Shown: positions 31,760-60,000 of the stretch, piece after piece
Position numbering within the stretch: position 1 is the stretch's first letter
How the letters are laid out: every line of letters starts with the position of its first letter
Source: Pavona decussata
Lineage: Eukaryota
DNA: 64,000 bases
Reading direction: 5' to 3'
NCBI GenBank assembly: GCA_977016875.1
Contig: CDRNST010000035.1
Location: forward strand, 1,612,001-1,676,000
Notes under the pieces: generated by a model
Told to the model about the DNA's origin: nothing
Databases searched by the model: none
The model's input: only the letters and a program-made list of their open reading frames with translations
Made by a program: the position numbers and the translations under genes

Positions 31760-31924
31760 AGTAGTAAGGGGAGCGGATATAGGTCATAGCCAATCAGCGT
31801 CGAGTATTTGGGTCACGTGCACATTCCATTCTGATGACGTCACAGTTTTTAATTTATGCTAATGTAAGCTAATGTATGCCACTCTCCAGGGTGGGGTCAG
31901 TACAAAATTGGCGTTTTAAAAAAA
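31760..31924 (+). repeat. Left terminal inverted repeat
   Basis: Reverse complement of 56910-57079. Apart from one extra terminal AGT on the right, there is 1 indel and 2 substitutions over the first ~145 bp, then further mismatches. Confidence 0.95.
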
Positions 31925-33037: not shown

Positions 33038-33991
33038 CTATTTGCCAATGGGAATGTCCCATTCCATGGGGTCATAGTTCTGACGGATGCACATCAGCGC
33101 TGATCCATTTTGGTAGGCTTTTTTGGCTTGGGCTTTGACACGTTTCACGTAGAAGGTCGGTTCATGACTCATGTCAAAGACTTGCCGTATGAACATGGAG
33201 TCCTTGGACATGTCTTCAGCGGATTTGTAAGTGCACACGTTTTCATAGTGGAGGAAATCTTTGATGTTCTCTTTGCTGCCACGCACGAAGCTTGCCCAAG
33301 AAAATCGGTTGGTGTTCATCAGGGTGTTGGCCAAGATGCGATTGCGCAGATCTTCTTTCTCAAAGCTTTTGTCTTGCGTGGAAACATACTTGAAGGCATA
33401 TTCTTGCAGCTCCAAGTTGCGATTGACGTAATCCACAGACATATCTCCAGCCATGAGAAAAATCACTTGGTACCAGGCTTTCCACACGGTTTCAAAGGGA
33501 ATGGCTTCCACGATATGCTGGACTAACACCAAGTCCACACGTTCCACAGCATCATGGACTTCGTTGTAGCAGGCTGGATCTTTGCATTTCATCACGGATT
33601 CTACCAGCAGGGCCCAAGCGATCCACACGTAAGCCTTAAACTCATCATGGCTGGCTTTGATTTGAGTTATCTGATCTTCATCCCACAACAGGCAGGAGGG
33701 ATTATCTCTTTGGAGGGCTATGTTGAAGTCGAAGGTGGATTCACGGCAACGAAGCTGATCGAGTTTCTGTTGTATCCACCATTCAAAGCGAAGGGGAAAC
33801 ACAATGTCCCATTCAAACTGGTCTTGATGGGGGATTTCAAAGTCAAACAATTTGTCCTCCATGTTGTTGTTGTTGTTGTTGTCATGTTTTGAAAATGTTT
33901 GACCTCCTCCTCCTTGTTGAGAACAGGAAGGTTCCATGATTCTGTAGATTTCTTTCACGAATACTTCGTCGTCGTCGTCGTCGCTTGCCAT
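33038..33991 (-). CDS. Polinton hypothetical protein (likely start MASDDDDDE)
   Basis: Long ORF; TATAAAA on the - strand at 34021-34027 overlaps the pPolB stop, ~30 nt upstream of ATG 33991. Confidence 0.7.
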   Translation of the reverse strand: MASDDDDDEVFVKEIYRIMEPSCSQQGGGGQTFSKHDNNNNNNMEDKLFDFEIPHQDQFEWDIVFPLRFEWWIQQKLDQLRCRESTFDFNIALQRDNPSCLLWDEDQITQIKASHDEFKAYVWIAWALLVESVMKCKDPACYNEVHDAVERVDLVLVQHIVEAIPFETVWKAWYQVIFLMAGDMSVDYVNRNLELQEYAFKYVSTQDKSFEKEDLRNRILANTLMNTNRFSWASFVRGSKENIKDFLHYENVCTYKSAEDMSKDSMFIRQVFDMSHEPTFYVKRVKAQAKKAYQNGSALMCIRQNYDPMEWDIPIGK

Positions 33992-34022
33992 CTGGAATGA
34001 CGCTGCAAATGAAGCGGCGCTT

Positions 34023-37000
34023 TTATAGATAGCCATAGGGATATGATTGATAGGTGTCACTGTCCAGAACGCGTTTGTCAAACACGAGTTTGTACGTTTT
34101 ATCTTGCGAGACCGTTTGAAGGGTCTTGTTGACGGTGACGCGTTGAATCTTGTGTGGATTGGTTAATGTCAACGTGTGTGGAGAGTCTTCGGGGTCCAGG
34201 ATTTCTGACAGGACCAAATCTTTCATCGTGTGAAAATTCAACGTTTGTTGACCGCGCATGTTGAGTGTGAAGCCTCGTACTTTGCATTCCACATGTTGTT
34301 GGTTTGTCTTGTACGCGTAATTCTTGGGTCCGGCTGCTACAAATTCTTCAATGAAATCGTTTTCTTTGAGTTCATTGGTGAAATCTCCCAGGTAATTGCC
34401 AAGGGGCACGTGGGCTTGTCCCGGTTTCCACGTGTAAATGACGGAATCGGTGTCAAAGTACAGGACGCGTTGATCCAATAATTCCAAGGCCTCGTACAAT
34501 TTGAGACGTGCGTGACACGTGGTAAAGCAGGCAATGAACACGTTCACGTTGGTTTGAATGGGATTGCATACATCCACGAAGGAATGAAACACTTCAACCA
34601 TGGCGTCGTTCATGACTTCGATGCGATGAATGATTTGATTGTCATTTTGCATTAACTTGAAAAAGGAACTGGGTTGCGTGAACGACGTGACTTGTGTTTG
34701 TTTAGGACGTTGTCCGTATTTTCCCCAATGAGAATTTAACATCAGTTTACACAATTTGCGTAATCCGGGGTTGCTTTCGATCTTGGTTCGATCCAGCGTA
34801 ATGCCTTCATGTTGAGCATAATCGTCGAGGTATTGAGCTCGTTGGGTTTCGGTGTGGCATCCTTTGGGCCATCCGCTCGATTCTTGTTTCATTTTCAAAA
34901 ACGTGTTCACGTACTCTTTGAACAAGGTCGTCGACGTTTCTTGGAAATGCCACACTTCATAGATGTACATCACTTTGTAACCTTTCTCGATCGCTTTCTG
35001 TAATTCGGGTGTGCAACACGCGCCGGTCAAGGCTCTTTCGTGATTGGTGTGCGTACAGGTCCACGTGCGTTCATGCATGGGTTTGACCGTTTCTTGCTCT
35101 ACACAGGTACGGCAAAGGGGAAACGTGAGTTTCTTTCCGTGTCGGTAGGGCAGGACGGGATGATACAATTGCCGCGGGGGTTCCACTTTGCATTTGACAA
35201 AACCAAAGTACTTCGATATGTCCGTGTGATTGGGTTGATCGATGAATTCGGGATGACCGACGGGGTAGGTGCCGTTCTTGTTGACCCACGGGTAAAGGGA
35301 ACAGACATCCACGTACCAAATTTGTTCGCCCGGTTCCACGCGATGATAGAGTTTAATGGCATTGGTGCGTCCGCCGAAAAAGGTATCTCTTGGGTTCAGG
35401 GGGAACTGATGTCCAGATTCTTCACAAACTGTTGGATGTCAGGGTGGTTCTTTTTCAAACGGTTCCATTCACATTCCCACATTTCCTTGAGAGGATAACC
35501 CAGGGCTTGAATGCTTTGACTTTGTTGAGCAGTGGCTTGACGCACGTTGTGCATGGTTTTCCCATCATGCCATGGATGTCTTTGATGGCGATTGGGAAAG
35601 TCCGTGATACATCCGTGGGAAAAGCACCCTTGAAATTGATACACGGTTTGGGTGACGTCATCGTAACCATCGACTAAATATTGATGAGACGGACCATGAT
35701 TCAACCGTCGTTCGCCTTGATTACCAGCATGCGCAATGCGTGGAGGGGTCACGGGGTCCTCGGTGGGATGGGCGCGGCGTAACACATCTTCTTCCCAATA
35801 CAGCCATTCGAGAGCGATCTTTGAATGCGTGTGATGCGGACGCCATCTTTGCAGGGGTTCGACGGCAATGGTATTGGCAGGCATCCATTTGAGGCGATAG
35901 GCTGTGAGACAAGCTGAGGCAATGGTAATGCATTTTTTCATGGGATTGATGCCTACAATGGATTTGAATTGACGTTGAAACTGCATGCACCCTTGTTTGA
36001 GCAACCGCACATCCGATTGACAATAACTGATCAGTTCGTTGTGGAAGTTAAAGATGTAACGATTAGCCACTTGTTCTGCATGTCACGTTAAGAATTCAGT
36101 TCTGCGTTTGGGTGACATACCATCGGGATCAAAGTAGTGCGTGTCGGGTATGTAGCCCACATACTGCTGATTGGCTTGCGTGTTAAAGAAGTGTGGAAAA
36201 AATCCTTTCTTGAGTTCGGTCAATCCAAAGGTGTTGGTAAAGTCTGATAAGGGCATGGGAAAAAAGTTCAGAGAGTCAATGAATTTGATTTGAGGTAATT
36301 CCAAGCTTAAAATTTTCGCTCCATTGACAATCTGTTGCAGATTGCTGGCATGTTGACGATACAGTTCTTCCAAGATCATGTAACCATCATACCCTTTGAA
36401 ATTGTGAGCCACCACAATCACTTGTTCGACGAGCGGTTCCTCTTGATGACTCAATTGATGCACCCAATGCAAGAAATCCGTCACGCACGTTTCTCCTTCA
36501 AATGTGAATTGTTGATCGTTTTGATCCGTTTCGGCGCATAACAAATTGGCCATGTGATTGCCCGTGTCCTGTCTGGCCTCGATGTCAAAGTACACAAACA
36601 CGGTGATGCCTTCTTGTTCGTCGTCTTGTCTTTTTTTCTTTTTGGGTTTTTTCACGGGTTGAATAAAACATTTGTGTTGTCGCAAATTACACACGTTGTG
36701 ACAACTGGGGCATTCACTCTCGCCACACACATGTTTGGGACCATCGCCTTTTCTCAAGACCAGTCCGCAATGAGTACAGACACGGTGGGTGTGACACACA
36801 GCATTTTTTTCTTGAGCTGTCGCGGGTTGATTGGATGACGTTTTGATTAAATGATTCACATGGCACGTGATTCCAAAGAAACGGCGTCCGCATTGTTCAC
36901 AGGGTACGGAGGCTGGACCTTGTTTGGAAAACAAGGGAAAATCGGGGCAATCGGCTTGATGGCAGCAGTAACACTTGGTGCTTTGGCAGCGATGATGTTG

Positions 37001-37945
37001 TAGGTCATCATAAAAAAATCCCTTGTCGCATTGCAAGCAAAAATAGTTTTTACTGAAAAAGGCAGCCAGGGAGGTGATGACGCTAAAGTGTCTATCGTGC
37101 ATGAGTAGCATCAATTGTTTGTTGCAAGGTGGACCTTTATGCACGATACTGTGCGCATGTTCGGCTGACACGACCACCAATCGATAATCGGGCAAGACGA
37201 TTTCAAAGAGCTTGAGCGCTTCCAATCCACAAGGACCCGGTGGAACGCGCGCTTCCGCTTGAAGGGCACGAGCGCGTTCTGATTGAATGGAACGACCTCG
37301 TCGAATCGCTTCATACATGGGATCCTGATCGACCAGGGCTATGGCGGTCACCAGAGCTCGGGCGCAACAATACTCATCTCGATTGTGAATGGTAATGACG
37401 CTTCGTTTGTTCTTGAGCAAGACGTCGTAGTTATCTGTACCAAAACGACATTTACGTTTTCCGGTGCCGGGGCGTGGCATGGTAATATGCGTCACATCCA
37501 GTTGAAGCGTATCATCCACTTCAAAGTTTTCGTTGGAGTTTAACATCTTGGAGATTTGATGTAAAATTTGTCGGGCACCCGACAAGGGATCTCGCCAATC
37601 TCCAATGCTGACATTGGCCGTCGTATGAGCACTGCGTAATCGATTGGATCCCAGATAGATTTGAATGCGATCGTGTTCGGGTAAATCTTCAATTAAATCT
37701 TCAATGACATCTGCCAATCCTTCTTCAAAGGCACGCACAATGTTTCCATGACCGACAGGAAACGTGTCGGGCGTATTGTTCAATCGAAGATGATACGAGC
37801 GACGTCGAATTCCATAACTACGCGCTTGTCGATCTCTGAAGGGTTCCAATTGAAATTGAAATTCACCTGGTCTTGAAAGGGCACCACCTTGTTGTCGTTC
37901 AAAGGCTTCCACTGCTTCTACTAATTCTTCATCGCTGTTGCTCAT
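34023..37945 (-). pseudogene. Protein-primed family B DNA polymerase (pPolB), disrupted by one nonsense codon and one frameshift
   Basis: Exonuclease motifs YFDIEA, AHNFKGYDG, FIDSLNF, YCQSDV; polymerase motifs YVDVCSLYP, KLMLNSHWGKYG, YFDTDS, GPKNY, KVRG; Vsr-like insert VDGYD...QFQGCFSHGC...EMWECEW. In-frame TGA at 36083-36085 where W is expected; a 1-bp loss in the G5 run at ~35399-35403 breaks PLNPRDTFFGGRT. Likely start MSNSDEE at 37945. Confidence 0.95.
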
Positions 37946-37981
37946 GATGAGACGAATGAAGCAGAAGCCGAGTGATCTCTC

Positions 37982-38131
37982 TTTTATAGATCCTTGGTAC
38001 CACGTGACGGTGGCGAATTTTATGACGTCATCATAAAAAAGGGACCCCCCTCTCCCCCCAGGGGGTCTTTTTTTGGAAAGTGACGTCATGCCGACGTCAC
38101 TGTCACGTGGTACCCTATAGACTCTATAAAA
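37982..38131. promoter_or_regulatory. Symmetric bidirectional promoter cassette 1 (TATA / E-box / CRE / stem-loop / CRE / E-box / TATA)
   Basis: TTTTATAGA..GGTACCACGTGAC..TGACGTCA..AAAAAAGGGACCCCCC..GGGGGTCTTTTTT..TGACGTCA..GTCACGTGGTACC..TCTATAAAAG, between the divergent ATGs at 37945 and 38171. Confidence 0.75.
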
Positions 38132-40341: not shown

Positions 40342-41307
40342 TCAACCTCCTCGACCACGCCCCCGGCCGCGTCCTCGACCACGTCCTCTACCTGAGGCTC
40401 TTGAAGCTCTTGAAGCTCTTGAAGCTCTTGATCCTCCTGAGGCTCTTGATCCTCCTGAACCCCCACTAGCCGAAAAGGAAGTTCGGGTAACTTCAGGATT
40501 GTTGGGATCATCTTTGTAAGTGGTCGTAATGGTATTGGTGTGAGTTACACCCGCCACGCGACGACCACGCGCTATTTGTAAATTGTCTTGTTGCAATCGA
40601 TCCAATTGACGCATAAGACCAGCTTGACGTCGACGTCGATTGCTGGAAGGGGGTGTGCCTCCTCCAGGTGAACCACCACCTCCAGGTGAACCACCACCAC
40701 CGGGTGAACCACCACCACCACCACCACCTCCTCCTCCTCCAGGTGAACCACCACCTCCACTACCTCCTCCACCTCTTGGAGGTGTACGTCTTGGAGGGGT
40801 ACGACCTCCTGTTGCTCCTGTTGCTGTTGCTGTTGCTGGAGCAGCGGCGGCCGCACGTCGTCTAGCTATACGTAAAATATTGGGCATGGGACGACCACGG
40901 GGTGTGCTTGGAGGAGGTTGTTGTTGGGGTGATGGCCACTGTTGAGCCCAACTGGCTTGAGAAGCTGGAGAAGCTTGAGAAGCTGGAGATAGTGTGGGTG
41001 GAGTTGGACCCATGGGAATGGGACTGAGATTGACACCAAAGGGATCTGGTCCTGGAGAAGGTCCAAGCGGAGAGGAAGTGGATACTCGAATCACATTTTC
41101 TCTGTCCATAGCATCGGTACTGACTCCAGATCGAGCCGCTGCTTGTCGTAAGAATTGATCATACCCTGACGGGGAGTCCAAATCGGGCCCTCGCAAGGCA
41201 TCTCCAATGTTGGCCATAAACCCGTCTGGGCTACTACTGGCTGATTGTTGTCTTTGGTATTGTTCCAGTAAATCAGATGTGGTCCAACTCATGGTCGACG
41301 TTTGCAC
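40342..41307 (-). CDS. Low-complexity Gly/Pro/Arg-rich protein with an (RG)n tail
   Basis: 321-aa ORF with SPGGGG and SRA repeats and C-terminal GRGRGRGRG. Confidence 0.65.
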   Translation of the reverse strand: MQTSTMSWTTSDLLEQYQRQQSASSSPDGFMANIGDALRGPDLDSPSGYDQFLRQAAARSGVSTDAMDRENVIRVSTSSPLGPSPGPDPFGVNLSPIPMGPTPPTLSPASQASPASQASWAQQWPSPQQQPPPSTPRGRPMPNILRIARRRAAAAAPATATATGATGGRTPPRRTPPRGGGGSGGGGSPGGGGGGGGGGGSPGGGGSPGGGGSPGGGTPPSSNRRRRQAGLMRQLDRLQQDNLQIARGRRVAGVTHTNTITTTYKDDPNNPEVTRTSFSASGGSGGSRASGGSRASRASRASRASGRGRGRGRGRGRGRGG

Positions 41308-41951
41308 ACGGTCGTATACCCTTCTCCTTTTAAAATGTTACTTTTTAAACGTTCGTCGTCGGAGGAACTTGGATGTAAATCAAAGAGTAAATAACCGTAC
41401 GGGCGTTTGGTAGATTCACGGTAGACTTGAAGCACGTCTTCCCAATCGGACGGAAAGGACTGCAAAGCTAAATTGCGCACACCCAATTGATCGCGCGGGT
41501 TTTTAAAGGCTATGATGTAGTGTGCATTCCTAGAGATGGTTTTGGCGTATTTGCCTGGAGGAAACATGTCTTGACACAGATACAAGACGGTCACATTACG
41601 ATGATGTGAATCTTTAGTAAATAAATCCAATACGCGCTTGTCATTGCTCCCTTCGGCCATGAGATCATCCAACACTAAAATGCCACCTTTTTGTTTTCCG
41701 AACCATTGATGGAGTTGATCCGTGTCGGGGATGCTTTCATGCATGCGGATTCCCTTTTTTGCCAAGTTCTTGAATTGATCTTGCCAAATGCCATAGCAAT
41801 AATGAACGTTGGGTGGACACTCTTTGAATAAAGTGGCTTTTTCTTCCAATATCTTGTCCACCAACCAGGATTTTCCGCACGAGGAAGGACCCACCAATAA
41901 AATGCTACTTGGAGAACGAAAATAAAATGCATGACATTCCATTTTTTTCAA
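41289..41951 (-). CDS. DNA packaging ATPase (A32/FtsK-HerA family)
   Basis: Walker A GPSSCGKS, Walker B ILVLDDLM, SHHRNVTVLYLCQ, and RPYGYL. Confidence 0.93.
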   Translation of the reverse strand: MKKMECHAFYFRSPSSILLVGPSSCGKSWLVDKILEEKATLFKECPPNVHYCYGIWQDQFKNLAKKGIRMHESIPDTDQLHQWFGKQKGGILVLDDLMAEGSNDKRVLDLFTKDSHHRNVTVLYLCQDMFPPGKYAKTISRNAHYIIAFKNPRDQLGVRNLALQSFPSDWEDVLQVYRESTKRPYGYLLFDLHPSSSDDERLKSNILKGEGYTTVCKRRP

Positions 41952-41985: not shown

Positions 41986-42537
41986 TTATACATCCAAATC
42001 CACTTTACGGAAGTTACTTTGTTGTTTGGGATTCATTCCCAATGTTTTTACATACATTTCATTGACAATTAAACGTTCAACTTGATGGCCTACTCGATGA
42101 TCGTTCATGACATAATCTCTGTCAAAGCAGTTGACAAAATCTTCCATGGTTTTTCCTCTGGCTTTGTACTTGAGGTACATCAAGGCATAATGCCCACAGG
42201 CATTGGAATCCAACGACTGCAAGGGTACTCCGTTGCATACAATCCTTTCGAATTCTTGCCGATTCAACCAGGGAACCAAGGCGGAACGATACCAAGACAG
42301 AGGTATTCCATAACTGTCCATCACTTCACAATCCCCTTGGTGCGTGTAAAAGGAGATCCAATGACTTCCGGGCTGATCGTGCGGATCCGTATTGACAATG
42401 TAAGCTTGAGGTTCGTACAAATCTGGTTTGGAAGGTAAACGATCCGCAGCAAAAACACCCACAAAAATAGATTTGAGATGAGGGTCTTGTTTGGCCAAGT
42501 AATCCAACTGTTGCGTGGTCAAGGCTACTAATTCCAT
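41986..42537 (-). CDS. Adenain-like cysteine protease
   Basis: NTD...GSHW (His), DSYG (Asp), LQ...ACGHY (Gln/Cys). Confidence 0.93.
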   Translation of the reverse strand: MELVALTTQQLDYLAKQDPHLKSIFVGVFAADRLPSKPDLYEPQAYIVNTDPHDQPGSHWISFYTHQGDCEVMDSYGIPLSWYRSALVPWLNRQEFERIVCNGVPLQSLDSNACGHYALMYLKYKARGKTMEDFVNCFDRDYVMNDHRVGHQVERLIVNEMYVKTLGMNPKQQSNFRKVDLDV

Positions 42538-44805: not shown

Positions 44806-45850
44806 TCAGTGATTTAGGCGCCTTTCAAACTTGAGAGTCACAATCACATCACCTCCAAGGAAATCCACTAGTTTTCCATCCGTTTCTGTCATGGCCACTT
44901 CGATGTCATCGATAACATTTTTACGAATGGGTAGAAACTCTATGTGTCTTGGTTCAAAGTAAACGCGACCACGTCCTTTGGCATCAAACACCACTTCTCT
45001 TATCTTGTTGGTGATCTGGTGCCCCACCACTTGCGTCTGATTGGCATCGCAAAAGACAAACAGGCTTTTGACAGGGCTGCCAAAATTCATGATGAAATGC
45101 TCATTGATGTGGGTCATTCTCCAATTGCTCCAGCACGTCAGTTTCACGTAAGCTTCAGTTTCATCGTGTAGACTGGTATCAAAATCAGTATCACCTGGGA
45201 AAACCGTTTGCCAAAACTTGTTGGGAGTTGGATTGGGAATGTTGGGTTTGTCATAATGTTCAATGTGCAGTCCATAGTCCAGATCATAGACATCCTTCAA
45301 CTGGCCCGTCTTCTCATCTTTTATTTTTTCCACTTTGATGAAATGAAACGCCAACGCAAATGAAAGGCTCATATAGATATACACTTTTCCTTTGTCTAGG
45401 ACGTCTGTGTTGTCAATCAGAAGTTCTTGCTGTCCAGCTCGTTCTTGCCACTTGAACATGGGACGATTGGTTTTACCATCGGCGTTTGCCCATCTTGTTC
45501 CAGGGGACAGATCGAAGTAATAGTTAAAATCAATCCAATTGAACATTTTGTTGAAGAGAGACGTACGTACCATCTTGCACGCGCGGTTGATCATCCATCA
45601 CTCGTTCTACTTTTAGATTGTAGTGTTTTTTCTTTGGTACGATCAGATTCATACCAAAGGGAATTTTACCAAAGACATCGGCTTTCAATGTCGTCTGCAC
45701 ATCGGGAAACGAAATGCTGGACAGGCCCACTTCCCAATCGTTTTCTTGAAAGAACAACTGTTTGGGCAACCGTACCTTGTATTGGTTCGGACGATTGTTG
45801 GGAAAAATCTTCTTACTGGCAGTGCTTGGTAATGTTATGTAGAAGCTCAT
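44806..45850 (-). pseudogene. Minor capsid protein (penton/PX) copy 1, frameshifted
   Basis: N-terminus FYITLPS..S...FPNN...Y.VRLP...WEVGLSSISFP; C-terminus LFVFCD...QVVG...FEP...FLPIRKNVIDDIEV...G.LVDF...VTLKF. The halves are joined if a 4-bp duplication in ACGTACGTAC (45561-45570) is removed. Confidence 0.88.
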
Positions 45851-46927
45851 AATGTGACCAAATCTTTCTTGTTAATCCAACCGTTGTACTTGCTCGGCCA
45901 ACCTTTCCACTGAATGAAAACTTGATTGCCGCGCTTCTTTAATACTTTTTCGACACGGAAAAATGCGTCTTCAGCAATGTTGACTTTTTGTAGATCAGGT
46001 TCGTAAAACGTGCCTTTGACCGCCGTGCCGTCGTATTCTTGAATGTGATAACTCGGGACGGGACCTGTCAAGCGTCGTCGAATGACAAACACTTCTTCCG
46101 TCCATCCTGGCAGATAACTTTTCTTAAAAACACGTCGGACTTTACTCAAGCGTACTTTGTCTCCCACTTTAAATTTAAAACGCGTGGTAGGACGCACACG
46201 TGTGGCGTACAACGTTTTCCATACGCGTCGATCGTTTTGCATGGTCACGTCTTTAGGCGGCATGCCAATGGAACGATGTTTGGCTGCATTGTACCCTTGA
46301 ACCAAATCGGGTAACATGGTGATGTACGTCAACGTGTTATTCGCCGTCAAAGCACGGTACATGCGTGCTTTGAGTGTACGATTAAAACGTTCCACCGTGG
46401 CGGCTTTGGTATCGCCATGCGTGCTGAACAGATGAATGCCTTTGTCTTTTAAAAAAATCCTGAAACGTTTTATTGTAAAATTCACTGCCCTTGTCCGTTT
46501 GCAATTGCACGGGTTGACGTCCTTCTTTGAAAATCACTTCAAAAGCTCTTTGGAGTTCCTTTCCCGTTTTGTTCTTAATGGGAATGGCCCAAGCGTATTT
46601 GGATAACACGTCAATCACCGTCACCAGATATTTGAATCCTTTATTTTGACGACTCATCTTTTGCATGTCCACCAGGTCCGCTACCCATTGATGATCGATG
46701 CCCAAGGCCACCGTGGGATTCGTCGCATACCGTCGTCGCACGGGTTTGTGAAGCGTGTAAGGTAAATTACGACTCAAGATGGATTTAATTTTGGCAAGAG
46801 GTACGCCAGTCGCTTTTTGCAATCGATCCAAACCGCCATATCTTCCAGGATTTTTGGCATCGTAATAGGTCTTGATCACCATACGTTCTAAACGTTTTTC
46901 TTTGTCTCTTTTCCGTTTTCGTACCAT
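45847..46927 (-). pseudogene. Retroviral-like (rve) integrase with a C-terminal chromo-like domain, frameshifted
   Basis: WVADLVDM (D), LQTDKGSEF (D), VERFNRTLK (E), FKVGDKVR, IQWKGWPSKYNGWI. The frameshift lies in the A7/T homopolymer at ~46447-46457. Confidence 0.93.
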
Positions 46928-49751: not shown

Positions 49752-49783
49752 GATGGAAATGACGACTGAGCGCTGAACCTCCT

Positions 49784-49934
49784 CTTATAGTCTCTAGGAT
49801 ATGATGTCATCATGACGTCAATACCCCACGTGATCCTAAAAAAGGACGACCCCCCTCCCCCCCCAGGGGGTCTTTTTTGAAGTGACGTCATGCCGTCGTC
49901 ACCGTCACGTGGTACCATGTCAAGTCTATATAAG
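49784..49934. promoter_or_regulatory. Bidirectional promoter cassette 2 (paralogue of 37982-38131)
   Basis: Shares GACCCCCC..CCCCAGGGGGTCTTTTTT..AAGTGACGTCATGCCG.CGTCAC.GTCACGTGGTACC..TCTATA with cassette 1; lies between divergent ATGs at 49751 and 50012. Confidence 0.75.
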
Positions 49935-50011
49935 AAACGCTCATGCCCCTGTTCGACACTCGTTCCAGAGCTGCCTTGATCCAGTGATTGTCAAGACGTG
50001 ACGCAGAAAAG

Positions 50012-50353
50012 ATGTCAAGACAAAGCAAACGTCTAAGGTCAGAGCCACCTGAAATACAAGACTTAACCTTTACCTGTTTTGTTTGCCGAGCCACTTCAGA
50101 TTCCTGTGCGAACAATGTGATTCGTATGCACTGCTGTAACCAGTTTGTCCATGGCACATGTGCAACACGATGGGCTTCAAGCCATGATCGATGTGGACTT
50201 TGCAGACAGTCCCTAAGAGTCACAACAGCTGTTGCTGCCCAGCCCGTTCCTGTGGGTGTAGCCCCTAGCCGAGAAAACATGACGCGCCAGCAAGTCCTGG
50301 ATCGCTTACGAGGATTACTCAACTCGGATGAACTGCAACGCCAACTGGATCGA
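50012..50353 (+). CDS. Constant exon: RING-variant zinc finger (putative E3 ubiquitin ligase) plus a helical linker, ending at a phase-0 splice donor
   Basis: CFVC-x15-CC-x4-HGTC-xxx-W-x6-CGLC; codon boundary CGA|GTAAGA at 50353/50354. Confidence 0.8.
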
Positions 50354-50523
50354 GTAAGAAGATTATTGACATTCTTGATTTTATCATGCGCTCTTGTCAT
50401 GACATTATTATTGTTATTATTGTTAGTATTGTTAGTATTGACATTATTGACTCTTGTCGTGCGTATTACGTATTATTACGTATTATTCGGTGCACTGAAA
50501 AAAATGTATTTTATTTTTTTCAG

Positions 50524-50835
50524 TGCACTGAAAGACAACAACGAGTACTATGGACAGTACATTCCACGCTAAGTCATCTTCTTTCCAATGATTTTTTATT
50601 AGTGGTGATTGGAAATCGTTTATTCTTAACCATGATGGACCATATCATTACCAATACATTTGTTGATCCCTCCATATCAGAAGAATTAAGTCTCTTGTAC
50701 CAAGAACTTCATGTCGATGAAATCGAAGGATATTTTATCCTTTTAAAAAAATCGATAGGTGGTCTTCGTACCTACGGCACTGTCTTAGACTTTAGAGCAG
50801 ACGATTTTACCGGAACACCTTTTGTTTTTTCTTAG
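50524..50835 (+). CDS. Variable terminal exon V1 (CTERQQRVLW...GTPFVFS*)
   Basis: Acceptor TATTTTATTTTTTTCAG| at 50523; open in phase 0 to TAG. Confidence 0.7.
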   Translation, partial: CTERQQRVLWTVHSTLSHLLSNDFLLVVIGNRLFLTMMDHIITNTFVDPSISEELSLLYQELHVDEIEGYFILLKKSIGGLRTYGTVLDFRADDFTGTPFVFS

Positions 50836-51126
50836 CTTTCAAGGGAGGATCCTGATGGAAATTGGATATATCTTAGAGACCTTCATAGACATCTTAATGG
50901 AGAAGATCTTTACTCCAGCAAAGATAGTGATGATGATGATGATTTGTATATCGATGACATCAATATCGATGTCGTAAGATATCGATATAGAACTATTAAA
51001 AAATATAGTTACATCTTCATATATCGTACAATGAATAATCCAAGACGAATAAGACTTTTTAAATGGCCGTTACTTGATTCTTCACCTCCACATATTTCCA
51101 TTCATGTTGACATTTCATACGTTTAA
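50836..51126 (+). CDS. Variable terminal exon V2 (LSREDPDGNWIYLRDLHRHL...)
   Basis: Acceptor TTTGTTTTTTCTTAG| is also the V1 stop codon; phase 0. Confidence 0.7.
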   Translation, partial: LSREDPDGNWIYLRDLHRHLNGEDLYSSKDSDDDDDLYIDDINIDVVRYRYRTIKKYSYIFIYRTMNNPRRIRLFKWPLLDSSPPHISIHVDISYV

Positions 51127-51138
51127 TTTAATTTTTAG

Positions 51139-51441
51139 CTTGAAGAAACCTTTCCAGAAGAAAATTGGAGATATGTTCGATACTTGAAAGAACACCTTGA
51201 TCGTGAAAATCATTACTTGGTGATAGATAAAATAAGTTATGTTTACAATGCTTACTATAGATCTAGTTGTATATGGATAATAGATACCTCTTCAAGAGAT
51301 ATTCTTTTTTGCTTAAATAGCGACCTTTTTACTTTTACTGATGCCTTTCCTCGCATCACCATGCTTGTCTATATCCATGAAAGCCATCCAATCGAACCAA
51401 ATTTTAATTTTAACGTAGACTATGGCATCGGATCATTTTAG
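51139..51441 (+). CDS. Variable terminal exon V3 (LEETFPEENWRYVRYLKEHL...)
   Basis: Acceptor TTTAATTTTTAG|; phase 0; N-terminus similar to V2. Confidence 0.7.
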   Translation, partial: LEETFPEENWRYVRYLKEHLDRENHYLVIDKISYVYNAYYRSSCIWIIDTSSRDILFCLNSDLFTFTDAFPRITMLVYIHESHPIEPNFNFNVDYGIGSF

Positions 51442-51455
51442 TTTTTTCTTTTTAG

Positions 51456-51782
51456 GTCTTTTCATTTTGGTCTGGTCCAATTTATCCTAGAGGAATGGAT
51501 ATAAGTCACTTCACTTGGGAACGTCAATTCATCACTACACAATTAGCATATCAACGTAATACATATAATAATACAAATACTAGAAGCGTTCAATTCACAC
51601 TAGATATGCCTTTTCCTTTATTTTCCTAGCCACCTTATCAAGTTGTTATTTGCGTATTTCAAATGAGACGTGAATTAATCATCACCGCAAGAATAGATAC
51701 AAGACCCAAGTACATACTCATATTAGATACCAAACGACTTTTTTCCATTTTTTCTTTTTTACTAGCTACCTTTCATATTTGA
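51456..51782 (+). CDS. Variable terminal exon(s) V4 (51456-51629) and V5 (51630-51782), or one exon with a nonsense codon
   Basis: Acceptor TTTTTTCTTTTTAG|GTC; the in-frame TAG at 51627-51629 is preceded by CCTTTTCCTTTATTTTCC, so it is also an acceptor candidate. Confidence 0.5.
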
Positions 51783-52191
51783 AGGGCGTCACAGATTTGA
51801 AGCATGGAGTCCAATAGGAATAGCAAGATCACTTATCAGACAATATAATAAACAACAAGCACCCCCTTTTGTAGATCATTATCGGTGTGGAGTAAGAGTC
51901 CGTCATCTAAGTGAAGAATATGAAACTCTTAATGAAACTCTAATGGATTTGTGGAATCGAGCTCCACCATTTTGGTATAGGTATACATCGATATGTATTG
52001 AAATCACTGTCAGAGGTCATAGGTGTATCTTGCCATTCATCCTTGAAGATGTCAAAACATTCATGGCAGTCTTCATACCTAATTACAAATTTTTAGTTAA
52101 TTTATTTTACTATACCGAGGGTGTACCTTGCACCGGTAACTGTTTTCAACATTCTAAAAGACTTTACTTTATTACTTGTTATGTCCACTAG
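51766..52191 (+). CDS. Variable terminal exon V6 (LPFIFEGRH...)
   Basis: Acceptor TTTTTTCTTTTTTACTAG|; phase 0; open for 141 codons. Confidence 0.72.
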   Translation, partial: LPFIFEGRHRFEAWSPIGIARSLIRQYNKQQAPPFVDHYRCGVRVRHLSEEYETLNETLMDLWNRAPPFWYRYTSICIEITVRGHRCILPFILEDVKTFMAVFIPNYKFLVNLFYYTEGVPCTGNCFQHSKRLYFITCYVH

Positions 52192-52653
52192 TTTCCCTTC
52201 GTCTTTGGAAGAGAAGAAGATGCCTTGACTCCAAATTACATCATAAGTTCTCTCATTGAACTATACGAAGATCACATTACTGTAGAACCCAATTATGAAG
52301 AATATGGGGGTATTGACTTGCACTGTATAAATCAAGATGGAGATCTATTTTATTGGACTTTTAATCATAGAGATAGATGGATAAGAACGTCAGAATGCAT
52401 GCATATGGAAATTGATGGTCATTTTTGTTACACGCATGATATAGCTTATGATTTAAAAGCATTCATGGGATTTCTTATTCCCACTTATTCATTTTACATT
52501 TATTTAGACTACAGCATTTCACAAGCTTATTACCAAGGTCGATGTACAGCTAGATTCACTACACATACCCAAAACTGTACTCAGTGTCATCCTGGGAAAC
52601 GTGAATACACCCTCGCTCATCTATCGTTTCGTTCTCCTTTGTCTCCATTTTAG
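52192..52653 (+). CDS. Variable terminal exon V7 (FPFVFGREEDALTP...)
   Basis: The acceptor TAG is the V6 stop; paralogous to V6 and V8. Confidence 0.72.
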   Translation, partial: FPFVFGREEDALTPNYIISSLIELYEDHITVEPNYEEYGGIDLHCINQDGDLFYWTFNHRDRWIRTSECMHMEIDGHFCYTHDIAYDLKAFMGFLIPTYSFYIYLDYSISQAYYQGRCTARFTTHTQNCTQCHPGKREYTLAHLSFRSPLSPF

Positions 52654-53058
52654 TTTCCGTTTAAATTCTGGATTCAAAGCAGACATCGAAGCTTGACACC
52701 TGAATCCTTCATTCAACGACTCATTGAAGATGTCGATCACCCCTATACTATACGACATGAATGTGATATCAACCTATACCACGAAGTAGTAATCAATTCA
52801 ACTCAATCTAACGAACGATTTATAGAACGACGACCATTAGTTCGACAATTGGTTCGACAATTCACGCTCGACATAAAAATCAAAGGGTATCTCTGTCACT
52901 TGCCATACATTTTAAATGATATGGAACAATTCCTTTCGTTTCTCATTCCAAACAATTGTTATTATTGTTATTTATGTTTTGAAACGGATTTTGATGATGT
53001 AGAAGAAGCGCAGGACTATCAATATAGACCCTACGTCATTGATTTTTTTCAATATTAA
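52654..53058 (+). CDS. Variable terminal exon V8 (FPFKFWIQSRHRSLTP...)
   Basis: Acceptor TCTCCTTTGTCTCCATTTTAG| is the V7 stop; paralogous to V6 and V7. Confidence 0.72.
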   Translation, partial: FPFKFWIQSRHRSLTPESFIQRLIEDVDHPYTIRHECDINLYHEVVINSTQSNERFIERRPLVRQLVRQFTLDIKIKGYLCHLPYILNDMEQFLSFLIPNNCYYCYLCFETDFDDVEEAQDYQYRPYVIDFFQY

Positions 53059-53068
53059 TTTTTTTCAG

Positions 53069-53581
53069 CATCACATCCAATTTGATGTCAATGATGAATG
53101 CGATGACTTTAACTCCACTCAATCTCAATTTCCGATTCTATTTGGACAAAACAGAAGAATCAGACAAAATGTCTTTGCATTTACAAGAAGATTATATGAA
53201 GATTATCAGCAATCCATTTATCAAGCTCATTATTGGCCTGTGGGTATTGCTAAATTTTTCAGAACAAGGCATAACCTTCTATGTCAGTCGTTTGGATGGC
53301 ACCGACGAGGACATCGAACCGCATTAAGTCAAATAGCTATATCTATCTATATAGATTACAAAGATTGTAAAGAAGAGCAGACCGTCTATAATGATGTGAT
53401 GCATTTTCTAGATTATCTCTTAGGAGGCAATCAATACTATTATGCAGAAATTTGGGTACGTCCACTTCTATGTCAAAATGACAGGTTCAATCCAAATGAT
53501 AGGTTCAATCCATGTGCATGGCATAGGAATAGTATTATCAAAAATTATTCCATTCTTTCTGGTAATGATTTTTCTAATTAA
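53069..53581 (+). CDS. Variable terminal exon V9 (HHIQFDVNDEC...QFPILFG...)
   Basis: Acceptor AATTTTTTTCAG|; phase 0; contains ISIYID...VYNDVMHFLDYLL like the other cassettes. Confidence 0.7.
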   Translation, partial: HHIQFDVNDECDDFNSTQSQFPILFGQNRRIRQNVFAFTRRLYEDYQQSIYQAHYWPVGIAKFFRTRHNLLCQSFGWHRRGHRTALSQIAISIYIDYKDCKEEQTVYNDVMHFLDYLLGGNQYYYAEIWVRPLLCQNDRFNPNDRFNPCAWHRNSIIKNYSILSGNDFSN

Positions 53582-53598
53582 GGCCTTTGTCTTTTCAG

Positions 53599-54069
53599 AC
53601 GGTTAAAATTCAAGAACTTGAACTTATTTATCATACCTGTATCCGGTTGGATATTTTTATCGAGGCCATGGAACGATTGTTTTTTTCAGGATTATGAAAT
53701 ATTGACTGATATCCAAGAAGTTTGCCATATCTTACGCCTGTTTGATCATGTCTATGATGAATACTTGATTGGGCATCACGAGGATATTACAGAAATCGAA
53801 CTTTACATAAGTGTCACATGTAATCGCATCAGATTTCCTTCAAGAAATGATACAAGACCTATTGGATAAGTCGTTTCCTCCGCGAAATCAAATCACTCCT
53901 CAATTTTGCATTGATTCCAAGAAGACGTATTCCCATTCGATTTTGCTTTCTCATATACGGACACGATCCTAGACGCATGAGTCTTTTCAATATCAATGGA
54001 TTGATTGCCTGGTTGAATCAACACATCTTATTGTATTACCAAAACAACGCTTGGCATCACCTTACATAA
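53599..54069 (+). pseudogene. Variable exons V10 (53599-53697, short) and V11 (53690-53869, frameshifted continuation to 54069)
   Basis: Acceptors CTTTGTCTTTTCAG| and TGTTTTTTTCAG|. An alternate frame after ~53850 reads WISRFLREIKSLLNFALIP, which resembles the family motif. Confidence 0.5.
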
Positions 54070-54086
54070 CTTTTTTCTTTTTTTAG

Positions 54087-54404
54087 GTTTTTCCCTTCAA
54101 ACTATATGCAAGCAATGTGCAGACAACTATACGTAGACTCGTTGACTTTATAAATAGCGACCACACTATTTTCACTTGGGATTTCCGTATTTCCGTCGTT
54201 CCAACTTCTTATTTGATTTCTATATCCTGTGATATAGCCGGTCCAAAAAATAGGCGATCAAACATTGATGAAGACATGTGGTGTTTCTTTCGATATTTAA
54301 TAACGCATGAAAACGTTACCATTCATTTTCATTGCAACCGTTACTTTGGTCTTGAACACGAACACGGTTTCGTATTAGCTAACCATGAGTTCAGTGACAT
54401 GTAA
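54087..54404 (+). CDS. Variable terminal exon V12 (VFPFKLYASNVQTTIRRLV...)
   Basis: Acceptor TTTTTTCTTTTTTTAG|; phase 0; FPFK start and ISCDIAG...IDEDMWCFFRYLI. Confidence 0.72.
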   Translation, partial: VFPFKLYASNVQTTIRRLVDFINSDHTIFTWDFRISVVPTSYLISISCDIAGPKNRRSNIDEDMWCFFRYLITHENVTIHFHCNRYFGLEHEHGFVLANHEFSDM

Positions 54405-54426
54405 TAAAAATGAACTTGTCTTTCAG

Positions 54427-54729
54427 TTCAATTTCAGATTTTGTGGAACGCATCATGCAGTATGCATCATCAACCATTTAGCTGCCGAAATGGAATCGAT
54501 ACACTACTGGTTACCTCATACCAGCGAAAATCCCATGCTTTTTACTGTGCATTTATACATTCACGGTCCCAGAGATGGTACTGTAAGACAAGCTCATTCC
54601 CACATGCAAGAATTCATGCATTTTCTTGATGCTGTTGATCAATTCAATATATCGATCAATTACTTTTATACAGATTCGTTTACTTACCATGTTGTAGAAT
54701 CTAGTCTTAATATTGAATACCAATTTTGA
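54427..54729 (+). CDS. Variable terminal exon V13 (FNFRFCGTHH...)
   Basis: Acceptor CTTGTCTTTCAG|; phase 0; VHLYIHG...HMQEFMHFL; AATAAA at 54769-54774. Confidence 0.7.
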   Translation, partial: FNFRFCGTHHAVCIINHLAAEMESIHYWLPHTSENPMLFTVHLYIHGPRDGTVRQAHSHMQEFMHFLDAVDQFNISINYFYTDSFTYHVVESSLNIEYQF

Positions 54730-54820
54730 ATACCGTTTTTTGTAAACTTTTTTGATTGTTATTGTTGGAATAAAAAAAAGACATAAATACCACCACCTGT
54801 GTTGTTGTGTCATTTTAATC

Positions 54821-55772
54821 ATGAGTATCTACGTCACGCTATTGAGCCCCAAAGGATCTCCCAACAAATTTACGGCCAAACTCCCCTACTTCCTCTACTT
54901 GACCGAAAAAGACTGGGAAGTAGCTCTGGTGAAACTAGCTCACCCCGTCATCGAAGATATCTTTTGGACCAGTAATGAGGCGCGTCGCAACACCTTCTCC
55001 TTCCAATTCAGTAATGGTGTCACCACCAAAACCAAAAAGCTGCGACTGTCCTCTCGAAAAATAGACAACTTCAAACAACTATGGACAAATCTGGCTTTTG
55101 AAATAGAAAAAGTCACTGGAGAAGAACTAACAAAACAAGCCACCTTGGACCCCTACGATGACACAGCAGCGAAAAATCTGCTCACCTTACCCAGCTTGAA
55201 AATCACCAATGGGCCCTTTCTTAGACAGTGTTGTTATTCACGTCCCCAAAAATAATATCTTGAGCATGAGTCGAACCTTTGCAGGAAAAGCCAACATTGT
55301 CACCAGTGATGGAAAAGTTGGAAAAAACCTCGCCGTCATAAATACCGCTGAGTCTTCCATCGATAACCTCGTCACGATCACTTCAGGAAAAGTCGATCTT
55401 GGTAGTACCAATACAGACGCCCAATTTTTAATTGGACCCAATATGTCCACAGATCTTGGACAGACACCTCTAGAACATGAAACCAACAAACGCATCTTTC
55501 TCATGTCAGACATTGTGCAACCTCAAATCGTGGGTGATACAACCAAAGGATTGTTGCGAGAATTCTTCATCTTCAACACCGCTTCAACGCATTATTTTGA
55601 ACCGGATCACCTCATTCATCATTCTGTCAGAAAAACTGTGTTTGACACCATCGACATTGAACTGAATGATGATCAATTCAAGGTAGTTGACTTTCATCAT
55701 TCTCATGACAAGGAACTGGTGACATCTGTCACGTTATGGTTCTCAAGACGATCCTTACGACATGTCAATTGA
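54821..55772 (+). pseudogene. Second, divergent penton/minor capsid-like gene, frameshifted near 55200-55220
   Basis: MSIYVTLLS...NKFTAKLP...DWEVALVKLAHP and IFLMSDIVQPQIVGD...LLREF...FEP...VRKTVFDTIDIEL...VDF...VTLWF parallel copy 1. Confidence 0.8.
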
Positions 55773-56909: not shown

Positions 56910-57079
56910 TTTTTTTTAAAAGGCCAATGGTGTACTGACCCTACCCTGGAGAGTGGCATACATTAGCCTACATTAGCATAAATTAAAAAACTGTGACGTC
57001 ATCAGAATGGAATGTGCACGTGACCCAAATACTCGACGCTGATTGGCTATGACCTATATCCGCTCCCCTTACTACTACT
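56910..57079 (-). repeat. Right terminal inverted repeat
   Basis: Ends ...CCCCTTACTACTACT, followed by the TSD GCTTTC. Confidence 0.95.
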
Positions 57080-60000
57080 GCTTTCTTAATCAGTCGCATT
57101 TTTTATTTACTGGACAAATGTAATTAAGTGAAATACATCAAATTCGCACATTTAATCAATGCGACAATCTATCACTTATTAGGAAACTTTAGTAACGACG
57201 ACAGCGACGGCAGCAATTAAATGAATTCACGTTTTTTCAAACGTTGTAGCGATTATTCCAACTCACTTTAAATTTCAAATGAAATTTCCTGAGTTGTATT
57301 CTTGGAGACCGCACCCAAGTTAAGAAAGGGAAAGAAAAATTCCTCGCTGTGTGTTTAAGTCCTCCATGAAGCGTCCCATTAGGGAATTTCACGTCCTAGT
57401 CGTACAGTGACGGCAAAGAAATCTACCACGTGCAATAGCACTCGAAATGTCAGCTTTTCTTTTGTCTGTTCACGGTGGTCAATTTAACGGCTTATCATCC
57501 CAGGTCATAAAAACATTGATTTTCACTTGATCCCCTATCGATAGAAAATATTTCCTTTAATACTTCAAGAAAGTGCTGTCGTATTTTCGTGTTGTGTGCA
57601 TTCTGTATTCTAAGCAGAATATAAGAGAAGGTAAAGAAACTAAAGCACCGTCCAGAGAAACCGTACTCGCGGAGGGTCTTAGCTTATTTATCCAGGCTGT
57701 ATTAATCCAGCATTACTTAAGTTCCTTGCAAAAAGAACTTAAAAGGGATCACCTAGACTAGATACAGGTTTGTGCGAAAAAAAAAATTAGGGGAACTAAC
57801 TCCAATCCTCGTTAGCCCAGGAGGAAAAAACGTTTCACTATCTCTCTGGGAAAAGTCTTACCTCAACCGGAGCAGTTGAAGATCCAACCCAAGGCCACCG
57901 ATTTTTTCCGATACAACGAAAATCTTACAAGAGGACGATTATTTCTCCAGATATGTTTTTTCCATTGTTGGAAGAGATTATGGGGTATTGTTGGAAGAGA
58001 TTATGGGGTAAACATCTTTTGTTTAGCATCCATCCGTTGTTTTGTATAATAAACTTGGATGTGAGTGAATACTAAGGTGACAACGTGCATGGAGGATGTA
58101 TTTTCAAAAAGGTTAGTCACCTAGCAACAAGAATCTTTCTAAAAACCACAGACTAGTCTCCTTAATCAGGCAGTACAGCATTATATTTGAGCCGCTTATT
58201 TATGAGGTAACATTAGGTAAGGATTAAGGATAATGTTGCTCAAATAATAAAATGAGCAACCATGTGTAACGTCTGGAGTCTTATAATGAGCTCATTAATT
58301 CAAACCTTCATCCCTCCCCCCGGAGAAACCCCGAGCATTTGACCATTTCTCGTGCCCGAGGAGAAGGGCACTGATTTGACGCGAGAAGCCTTCCAGAGGG
58401 TAGGTGGGTGATTTGAACTTTAGCTGGGTGGGGTGGGGTGGGGTGGGGAATTTGAACCTGAATCTCAAGTTGACATCTTTCTGTGGCTTATTCTGCGAAA
58501 TACACGTGGTTCCTGATCCATGGACAAGTTGGAGGGAAAATTGTCGCTTTTTCAGTGATTGGCTCACCAAAAAGGGAATCCCCAATCTTTGCAGTGTTTT
58601 AGAAGGTGTGTATAAAAACCAGAATGATTGATTTGCAGATGTTCGAATTCAAATAAATTCTCTCTTAATGAGTGCAATATATGTACCACAGTTAAGAATG
58701 AAAATGAACCAGTTTCCGATCAATAAAACAGTGTATACCCCAAACTGGAATGTTTGGTTTTGGGGAGGAGCGTTTGATCTTCCAATTCAGTGCTAGGGAA
58801 GGGCATTTGAACGGCTTTTTGGCCCCGCGAGATAAGAATTTAAACAATTAAACCAACCGTCAAAAGTTCGAATTTATAGCTAGGGGATGTTGAATCTTCA
58901 AACTGATCGGCGTATGGCTGAGTGCTCTTGAGTATACAGTTTCTCAAACAAACAACAAATCAGCTCACTTGAGTTGCCTCTTATTTCATCCTTCGCTCTG
59001 TGCTTTTACATGGGATAAAGTGATTGACGGCTTGTAATGAAATTTAGGTTTAACATAAAGCACTCAACAGCCAGATAGACGAACGTTTCACGTTGTAACA
59101 GACGAAGGTCTTAGACCGACTATTAGACAAAAAAGCCGCTGCGCTTAATTCCAAATCGACTCAGGTTGATGTCCTTCAACAACGATGCGCAACTTTATCT
59201 GCGAGTTTCCTCTAGCTTGAAAACAAAAATGGATTTTTTCCTCGTAAATTATAAACTTTTCCGAGACATTTTTTGGTACAAATCATTTCATTCAGCTCCC
59301 ATTAGGAGATATCGCAGCCTCTGTAATCGTGAAGCAAATCACCGGTATAGATGTTTAATACCTGCTTTTCTTTCGAATATGAAATGAACTTCAGTTTGTA
59401 AAGGCGCGAAAGGTAATATCCGCCCGTAAGAATTTCCTTCATTTGCTAAGCATACACAAGTGCGGAAATTGAGCTGTGGAAATACTATTAAATTGGCTGC
59501 GGGCCCTAAAAGCTTTTGAGTAATGCCTTACACTTGAAAAACTCAGACCCTTTAGTGTCTCGAAAACTCGGGTCGATTTACGCAATTTGACAAAGGACTG
59601 AAATAATGGGTGGACGGACAAAAATCGGTCCGATTTATAACCTCTTTGGCAATACTATAGATTTTCGGAACCTGGCCGTTATTCTTCCTGCGTCTCACCA
59701 AAAAAACAAAACAACAACAACAACAACAACAAAAATCGGCCGACAAACAGTGACTTGTCAGTCGTTACGCTTTCAAAGCATCAACCCACAGTCCATGCAC
59801 TGAGGAAAAGATAAGGCTGGACATTCAGCTCACACATTATGCTTTGCGACCCTAACACAGCTAATAAGCAAATAGAAAGCCTCGGACATGCCATTATCAT
59901 GCAGCAAGTATATTTGCGAATATGGGTAAGATACAAAATGATCTGGCCTACACTTCCGCAGAGACTGTACACACCATAGCTGCTCGACTCGCTTTCCAGA

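Follow-up and report, generated by a model that had tools for sequence, protein, structure and literature searches.

The sequence analysed here, called the window, is a stretch of 64,000 nucleotides (nt) from Pavona decussata (NCBI GenBank assembly GCA_977016875.1, contig CDRNST010000035.1, positions 1,612,001 to 1,676,000 of the forward strand), and all positions below are counted from its first letter. It contains an insertion at 31760-57079 which, judged by its terminal inverted repeats (TIRs), 6-bp target duplication, protein-primed family B DNA polymerase (pPolB) and integrase, reads as a complete Polinton/Maverick element. Within this element an exon encoding a RING-type zinc finger ends at a splice donor motif and is followed, on the same strand, by an array of open reading frames (ORFs) that begin directly after acceptor-like sites. 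We refer to these frames as cassettes V1 to V13. The arrangement suggests a gene in which one constant 5′ exon would be joined to one of several alternative 3′-terminal exons.

A RING exon followed by an array of phase-0 cassettes

The features of the gene are given below together with comparisons to two related loci, L002 (RING exon 95% identical; ten cassettes plus a fragment of V5) and L003 (68% identical; ten cassettes). The ratio of non-synonymous to synonymous divergence is abbreviated dN/dS.

49927..49934, plus strand: TATA box of the RING gene, a CTATA[TA]AAG block about 78 nt upstream of the ATG
50012..50353, plus strand: constant RING exon with a basic N-terminal motif, RING-type zinc finger, disordered linker and helical hairpin; phase-0 end
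50354..50523, plus strand: intron to the first acceptor, with donor GTAAGA, a 9-nt tandem repeat and a duplicated GTGCACTGAAA motif
50524..50835, plus strand: cassette V1, 103 codons; the best conserved, its L003 orthologue 61% identical from residue 1; dN/dS 0.20
50836..51126, plus strand: cassette V2, 96 codons; N-terminus paralogous to V3
51139..51441, plus strand: cassette V3, 100 codons
51456..51782, plus strand: V4 and V5, doubtful cassettes of 57 and 50 codons; V5 (start 51630) overlaps the V6 acceptor
51766..52191, plus strand: cassette V6, 141 codons, FPFxF-type; paralogous to V7 and V8 (E = 1e-9 to 1e-8)
52192..52653, plus strand: cassette V7, 153 codons, FPFxF-type; L003 orthologue 46% identical from residue 1
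52654..53058, plus strand: cassette V8, 134 codons, FPFxF-type; dN/dS 0.57 against L003
53069..53581, plus strand: cassette V9, 170 codons; 96% identity to L002
53599..53697, plus strand: V10, probably not a cassette; 32 codons past an acceptor-like site, 22 codons in L002
53690..54069, plus strand: cassette V11, phase-0 frame of 59 codons with one frame change in the window copy; intact in L002 (126 codons) and L003 (130 codons)
54087..54404, plus strand: cassette V12, 105 codons; L003 orthologue 36% identical, its acceptor moved by a whole codon
54427..54729, plus strand: cassette V13, the last, 100 codons; L003 orthologue 51% identical from residue 1; dN/dS 0.15
54769..54774, plus strand: shared poly(A) signal AATAAA, between the last cassette and the TATA-like box that precedes the next gene (ATG at 54821)

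The RING exon opens with an ATG at 50012 and runs for 342 nt (114 codons) to the CGA that ends at 50353, directly followed by GTAAGA at 50354. A first-pass annotation of this DNA, made by a model from the letters alone, had placed a codon-boundary donor here, and the donor is present and in phase 0. The same annotation had listed 13 cassette starts, and each of these does lie behind a pyrimidine-rich tract plus YAG and opens a phase-0 frame. The pyrimidine fraction of the 14 nt upstream averages 0.82 at the 13 sites, compared with 0.51 at the 89 other YAG sites (Mann-Whitney p = 1e-8). At acceptor-like sites, frames of at least 90 codons favour phase 0: the counts for phases 0/1/2 are 8/1/1 (window), 10/1/1 (L002) and 10/2/2 (L003), and the reverse strand has no such frame; between 50400 and 54553 there is no minus-strand ORF of at least 50 amino acids (aa). 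The long cassettes have their first methionine at residue 37-111, in agreement with the earlier remark that an ATG is missing from the 5′ edges.

The previous count of 12-13 cassettes has to be lowered. V4, V5 and V10 were considered as true cassettes and rejected: none has a paralogue or a counterpart in L003, and V4 is also missing from L002. Because these three are short and unsupported, we count ten real cassettes (V1-3, V6-9 and V11-13). By paralogy, V6-V13 constitute one very divergent family, V2 and V3 have a common N-terminal motif, and V1 stands alone.

The layout is conserved in related elements

An initial search with the RING exon returned three close proteins, in all of which a prokaryote-style gene caller had carried the reading frame on into the intron; their contigs carry the same gene in the same Polinton context. 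Every cassette of L002 and L003 begins in phase 0 behind a YAG that a pyrimidine tract precedes. Many adjoin the next cassette directly, one TAG providing both the stop of a cassette and the acceptor of its neighbour. Orthologous cassettes align from residue 1, and where the acceptor position differs (V11 and V12) it has moved by exactly one codon. At greater distance, L013 (45% RING identity, about seven cassettes) and L014 (38%, about six) have a phase-0 donor followed by phase-0 cassettes, some of them clear FPFxF-type members, and the Desmophyllum locus L010 has the same donor-plus-array layout. Conservation of acceptor phase in homologous elements had been proposed as a test of the splicing reading; the phase is kept in L002, L003, L010, L013 and L014, and a search of related Polintons for a RING exon with phase-0 acceptor arrays, also proposed at that time, finds them down to 38% RING identity.

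The breadth of the family was assessed by a full phmmer scan with the RING exon against 1.84 billion representatives, which gave 91 hits. Fifty-two homologues reach the end of the exon; beyond it, the next two residues are ‘VS’ or ‘VR’ in 36 of the 52, and the first is V in 43. This continuation is a GT donor translated at phase 0 (V = GTN) and thus supports the splice model. Where relatives of the RING gene carry a species name, it is that of a stony coral, Desmophyllum pertusum or Oculina patagonica; the others are from coral-type metagenome assemblies. IMG/VR and JGI metagenome contigs contained no relatives of the RING exon.

A third lineage (P0100 in L011; Desmophyllum KAJ7321164.1 and KAJ7372839.1) encodes the RING and a C-terminal domain, X, in one uninterrupted ORF without an array, which indicates that RING+X is a genuine protein architecture in this family. 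Such single-ORF genes of other coral-associated Polintons (P0100/P0032, P0048 = KAJ7321164.1, P0045) encode a homologous RING module that shares the N-terminal motif and the helix, with the C-terminal domain behind it; they lack the intron and the array, and their elements carry pPolB and a protease. Comparison of the cassette family with the X domains of the single-ORF genes by hhalign detected no similarity (probability 0.3%). The intron-plus-array form is a derived elaboration of RING+X.

Some further observations concern the same set of relatives. Loci L004-L007 (ENA ERZ26692669 ctg60432, 187 kb, 139x) and L008-L009 (ctg60730) contain a 3,500-bp unit in many head-to-tail repeats that do not include the RING exon, and the L004 copies are 100% identical at a lag of 3500. 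The unit corresponds to L003 11392-14560, from just upstream of a V7-type cassette through the last cassette and the start of the next gene. It is either an array-derived macrosatellite or an assembly artefact, the exactly round period being suspicious. At L013 a second gene with a weak zf-RING_2 match (7317-7877, minus strand) lies head to head with the RING-array gene. Several tandem RING-exon-like stretches are found in P0029 (745 aa, 8 matched stretches) and P0084 (1841 aa), which may be gene models spanning several elements or true multi-RING proteins.

The cassettes evolve as coding sequence

Substitution patterns indicate that the cassettes are real coding sequence under purifying selection. 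When the window is compared with L003, synonymous sites prove saturated or nearly so (dS ~1 or saturated), and non-synonymous divergence is 0.25-0.54, with dN/dS of 0.15-0.57. The less diverged pair L003/L004, for which the counts are adequate, gave cassette dN/dS values of 0.24-0.57, and V11 gave 0.20 between L002 and L003. For the window against L002 the pooled dN/dS is 0.57, with V3 and V8 above 1 on few changes. Cassettes are 36-61% identical to L003 compared with 68% for the RING exon, and therefore evolve faster than the constant part. The conserved FPFxF-type motif starts at the first codon past the AG.

A Pfam search with all cassettes gave no match. The AlphaFold2 (AF2) model of V7 is an alpha/beta domain with a predicted local distance difference test score (pLDDT) of 65, and it found no match in PDB or BFVD (E > 0.2, template modelling score, TM, < 0.3).

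The constant exon resembles RING-H2 domains of ubiquitin ligases

The first-pass annotation had identified the first exon as a RING, an assignment upheld by zinc-ligand conservation, with the matches to RNF126 and to solved RING folds pointing the same way. The best sequence match of the exon is the RNF126 RING (E = 1.6e-6). Pfam zf-RING_2 is matched by 33 of 52 members of the RING-exon family; the window exon itself matches at E = 7e-4 with 20.2 bits, below the cut-off of 27.3. Eight zinc ligands are present with cross-brace spacing in the order C4HC3 and with an unusual adjacent CC pair (C-x2-C ... CC-x4-H-x2-C ... C-x2-C), and these residues (C22, C25, C41, C42, H47, C50, C61 and C64) are invariant or at least 90% conserved across 52 homologues.

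In the AF2 model of the constant exon (pLDDT 81) an N-terminal basic segment comes before the RING, and a disordered linker and then a helical hairpin come after it. By fold, the model is closest to the RING-H2 domains of RNF12, RNF165 and RNF38 that were solved in complexes with a ubiquitin-conjugating enzyme (E2); Foldseek aligned the model to such RING-E2 complexes with probability 1.00 and a root-mean-square deviation (rmsd) of 1.5-2.9 Å, yet with E only 6e-3. Taking sequence and fold together, the best matches of the constant exon are RNF126, RNF12/RLIM, RNF165/Ark2C, Arkadia and RNF38, with a resemblance that includes H-x2-C-x3-W. The Polinton RING differs from these RING-H2 ligases in that the fourth zinc ligand (His) is replaced and the CC pair is invariant. 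The model points to a RING-H2-like fold for the constant exon, which by this likeness would recruit an E2. The N-terminal basic motif is possibly nuclear-targeting. Ligase function and host targets of the RING/cassette proteins are a conjecture drawn from analogy.

One conserved promoter, one conserved donor and one poly(A) signal

The window, its close relatives L001, L002 and L003 and the Desmophyllum locus L010 all have the CTATA[TA]AAG block upstream of the RING exon, without variation. The donor is likewise conserved in L001, L002, L003 and L010 (GTAAG[AT]), and the exon edges are fixed despite intron lengths of 170, 122 and 77 nt. The only GTRAG[TA] motif conserved across all three arrays (window, L002 and L003) is the RING donor. 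At the far end, the AATAAA that had been reported downstream of the last cassette lies at 54769 and is conserved in L002 and L003; it is the only such signal common to the three arrays and the sole AATAAA in the L003 array. Promoters belonging to the cassettes themselves were considered and rejected, as there is no conserved TATA inside the arrays.

Other sequence motifs were noted around these signals. GTAAG[AT] motifs, all in phase 0 and near mid-cassette, are found inside V2, V6 and V13 of the window and L002 and are absent in L003; they might provide extra splice combinations or be there by chance. The GTGCACTGAAA motif occurs twice within 50474-50533, one copy lying about 33 nt before the V1 acceptor and the other straddling it. 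The duplication is also found in L001, L002 and L003, and the upstream copy in L003 is preceded by CAG as well; it could be a branch-point, decoy-acceptor or regulatory element. The region 49752-50011 is a divergent promoter region between the RING gene and a minus-strand gene at 49098-49751, and contains TGACGTCA (CRE-like) and CACGTG (E-box) motifs and a C-run/G-run palindrome. L002 and L003 have these motifs, and L010 retains the TATA box and similar C/G runs.

A model for alternative splicing of a Polinton gene

We consider it probable that the locus is one Polinton transcription unit in which the RING donor is joined to one of about ten phase-0 acceptors, giving rise to a protein family. 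According to this model, a single unit would be transcribed from the conserved TATA promoter (49927) to the single poly(A) signal (54769), and the RING-exon donor, the only strong conserved one, would be spliced to one of the acceptors. Translation would proceed through the chosen cassette to its stop, and because everything downstream would be 3′ untranslated region (UTR), the products would be 3′-coterminal mRNAs encoding RING-X1 to RING-X10. Every isoform would have a common N-terminal module (basic motif, RING-H2-like finger, flexible linker and helical hairpin) and a different C-terminal domain of 100-170 residues. The cassettes would act as target-binding modules, most plausibly directing the ubiquitination of different host or viral proteins, and by analogy the isoforms may form a set of ubiquitin ligases with different targets. 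Splicing at each acceptor, and which of the acceptors are used, are predicted from the DNA.

Evidence on the splicing step itself comes from a GenBank model of Desmophyllum pertusum, KAJ7386117.1, in which the RING exon is joined to a V1-like ‘CTER.QR’ exon at the predicted junction, two earlier acceptors having been skipped. The annotation of that genome combined RNA-seq evidence with ab initio predictors (PMC10022433). The central claim of the first-pass annotation, that choice among alternative 3′ splice sites produces RING+X isoforms, is thus partly backed, by a conserved donor and acceptor array and by one junction in a coral gene model.

Several points weigh against the model. Protein searches whose length range would have admitted one found no spliced RING+cassette protein or transcript of the window lineage, and every close relative in the databases is a genomic read in unspliced form. 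KAJ7386117.1 may be an ab initio prediction, and it chains V1 to a further cassette rather than stopping at the V1 stop, through a weak internal donor that makes this second link doubtful. At 8 of the 13 sites the acceptor AG is part of an in-frame TAG closing the upstream frame, so that an open phase-0 frame is automatic there; the informative facts at these eight are the pyrimidine tract, the missing ATG and conservation. The RING falls short of the Pfam cut-off and its fourth zinc ligand is non-canonical (CC-x4-H compared with C-x-H). Target binding by the cassettes is a guess, as they resemble no protein family or fold known so far. The model implies very long 3′ UTRs (up to ~4 kb for V1), which are unusual, and the window copy, with frame changes in several genes, may be silent.

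The same array could also be read as a chain, in which one long mRNA takes up whole cassettes, or pieces of them, as successive exons (e.g. RING-V1-Vx). KAJ7386117.1 is built in this manner, with three exons (the RING, the first 62 residues of a V1-like cassette, and a cassette), and the three internal phase-0 GTAAG motifs of V2, V6 and V13 in the window and L002 would suit it. However, every cassette has a stop up to which orthologues are conserved (V1 at 61% over its full length), the internal motifs are missing from L003, which has the RING donor only, and the donor inside V1 of KAJ7386117.1 is weak, consensus gene builders being inclined to favour long chained coding sequences; we therefore regard serial splicing as unlikely. 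Alternatively, the cassettes could come from transcripts of their own and be spliced to the RING exon in trans, as in mod(mdg4), where a constant 5′ part and many alternative 3′ exons have the same layout and all isoforms are trans-spliced (PMC13490949). Here all cassettes share one strand and lie close together, often without any gap between them, the array has neither a conserved TATA nor a promoter-sized spacer, and cis-splicing suffices for the layout, which together make joining in trans highly improbable.

Neither does the array look like a set of independent small genes whose translation starts at internal codons, AUG or otherwise, of an RNA that is either polycistronic or initiated separately, with the pyrimidine tracts incidental. 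Prokaryote-style callers do call ORFs at internal ATG, TTG and GTG codons; yet the first methionine lies 37-111 codons in, while conservation and the FPFxF motif begin at codon 1, the pyrimidine tracts are highly non-random, acceptor phase equals donor phase in every relative, and internal promoters were not found. We hold this explanation to be very unlikely. Least probable in our view is that the cassettes are decaying tandem duplicates, or a former polyprotein with stop read-through, that have no present function. Some cassettes are in the same frame and separated by a TAG alone, V4, V5 and V10 resemble debris, V11 and several other genes of the window copy contain frame changes, and V3 and V8 exceed a dN/dS of 1 against L002 (on few changes). 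In contrast, many neighbouring cassettes are in different frames, TAA and TGA stops are also used, and the ORFs are open with dN/dS well under 1 over saturated synonymous divergence in at least five divergent elements. Two further candidates were rejected outright: TAG reassignment or read-through, by the differing cassette frames and the TAA and TGA stops, and spliced-leader trans-splicing or an operon, as the cassettes have no start codons.

Returning to alternative splicing from a constant RING exon, the fast evolution and changing number of the cassettes would fit a conflict with proteins of the host or of competing viruses, and the cassettes may serve to degrade host defence proteins; both ideas are conjecture. 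More tentatively still than the splicing model, coral Polintons may possess a splicing-built ubiquitin-ligase repertoire, with one RING and ~5-13 fast-evolving recognition domains, engaged in an arms race with host or rival-virus targets; we view this as possible rather than likely.

Relation to known systems

Alternative 3′-terminal exons downstream of constant exons are known from Drosophila. In lola the constant exons encode a BTB domain, and mod(mdg4) and lola together are the familiar cases with 20-30 such exons. The Polinton array resembles both genes in having a constant N-terminal module followed by tandem paralogous alternative last exons, each with its own stop. It differs from them in several respects: mod(mdg4) and lola are host genes with a BTB constant part and zinc-finger variable parts, and mod(mdg4) is trans-spliced with exons on both strands, whereas the array has a RING as its constant part, an orphan alpha/beta domain as its variable part and a single strand, is carried by a mobile element and is predicted from its DNA. 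The joining in trans of a constant part to many alternative 3′ exons is documented for mod(mdg4) (PMC13490949).

The array also recalls the splicing of DNA viruses, with which it probably has 3′-coterminal mRNAs in common. The adenovirus major late unit and the polyomavirus early region each use one promoter and one donor with several alternative acceptors. In polyomavirus the shared exon is coding, there are two to four isoforms and there is no RING; the adenovirus leader is non-coding. The array, by comparison, would yield about ten isoforms from a coding RING exon, and no similarity to the proteins of these viral systems was found in sequence or fold. A third comparison is with TRIM and finTRIM genes, in which a constant ligase module and a rapidly diversifying recognition module have expanded through whole-gene duplication in the host. 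The logic is the same, but the Polinton array consists of alternative exons in a mobile element and has no B-box, coiled coil or SPRY domain.

The layout is thus known from mod(mdg4)/lola and from the leader splicing of DNA viruses; its place in a Polinton is unexpected. Polintons are regarded as old relations of the adenoviruses and of other DNA viruses of eukaryotes, and to our knowledge almost nothing is known of how their accessory genes are expressed or deal with the host. In the literature searched, no paper came up that reports alternative splicing or a RING gene for Polintons, Mavericks or adintoviruses, in line with the earlier remark that the arrangement had not been described in Polintons. 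If the model is true, Polintons exploit host splicing to multiply their proteome, and the array would be the first candidate for a system by which coral Polintons manipulate their hosts; the targets of its orphan domains could lead to antiviral factors of cnidarians. On the more tentative repertoire reading, the array, which would grow, shrink and diverge, would also be a virus-side counterpart to host TRIM-like expansions and a sign that Polintons use adenovirus-style alternative splicing as an expression strategy. The prediction is directly testable on existing coral RNA-seq data.

The host element and its surroundings

The assignment of the insertion to the Polintons, already made in the first-pass annotation, is sustained by pPolB, an rve integrase, TIRs and a 6-bp target-site duplication. 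Its other features are as follows.

31754..31759, no strand: left target-site duplication GCTTTC, the same hexamer at both element flanks
31760..31924, plus strand: left terminal inverted repeat, by inverted-repeat pairing, 94-98% complementary
33038..38089, minus strand: protein-primed family B DNA polymerase; Pfam DNA_pol_B_2 on three pieces, best E = 5e-26
41289..41951, minus strand: putative packaging ATPase; weak AAA_16/AAA_22 Pfam matches, 99% identity to the L002 homologue
41986..42537, minus strand: candidate adenain-like cysteine protease; weak Peptidase_C5/C48 Pfam matches below cut-off
45850..46927, minus strand: rve integrase with chromodomain; Pfam rve E = 9e-13, Chromo E = 1e-4
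56911..57079, minus strand: right terminal inverted repeat, by inverted-repeat pairing with the left end
57080..57085, no strand: right target-site duplication GCTTTC, matching the left hexamer

The TIRs are ~165 nt long with 94-98% identity. The polymerase of the window copy is spread over four ORF pieces, the interruptions being either breaks or introns, and the element also encodes a GRF zinc-finger gene; no capsid protein was recognised among the Polinton proteins by Pfam, PHROGs or PDB sequence search. Outside the array, one frame change each relative to L002 is found in the gene at 44809-45850, in the integrase and in the gene at 54821-55769. The L002 call for the gene at 42902-43943 was matched in two pieces, and the window ORF is longer, intact and in agreement with L003; the break appears from this comparison to sit in L002, not in the window.

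Rfam and transfer RNA (tRNA) scans of the window gave no matches. A single-exon gene of the rhodopsin family of G-protein-coupled receptors (7tm_1, E = 8e-14) lies at 28651-29577 on the minus strand, 2 kb from the left end of the Polinton, and marks the host as an animal; the coral relatives of the RING gene make an anthozoan host probable. On the other side, the host flank contains a 387-aa ORF (62399-63562, minus strand) with a weak match to the phage-integrase N-terminal SAM-like domain, adjoined by an assembly gap (N run 61610-61764); from its sequence it may be a tyrosine-recombinase element, Crypton- or DIRS-like. Two more inverted-repeat pairs of 66-69 nt (78-92%), between 8222-8826 and 22671-26988 of the host flank, are probably remnants of other transposons.

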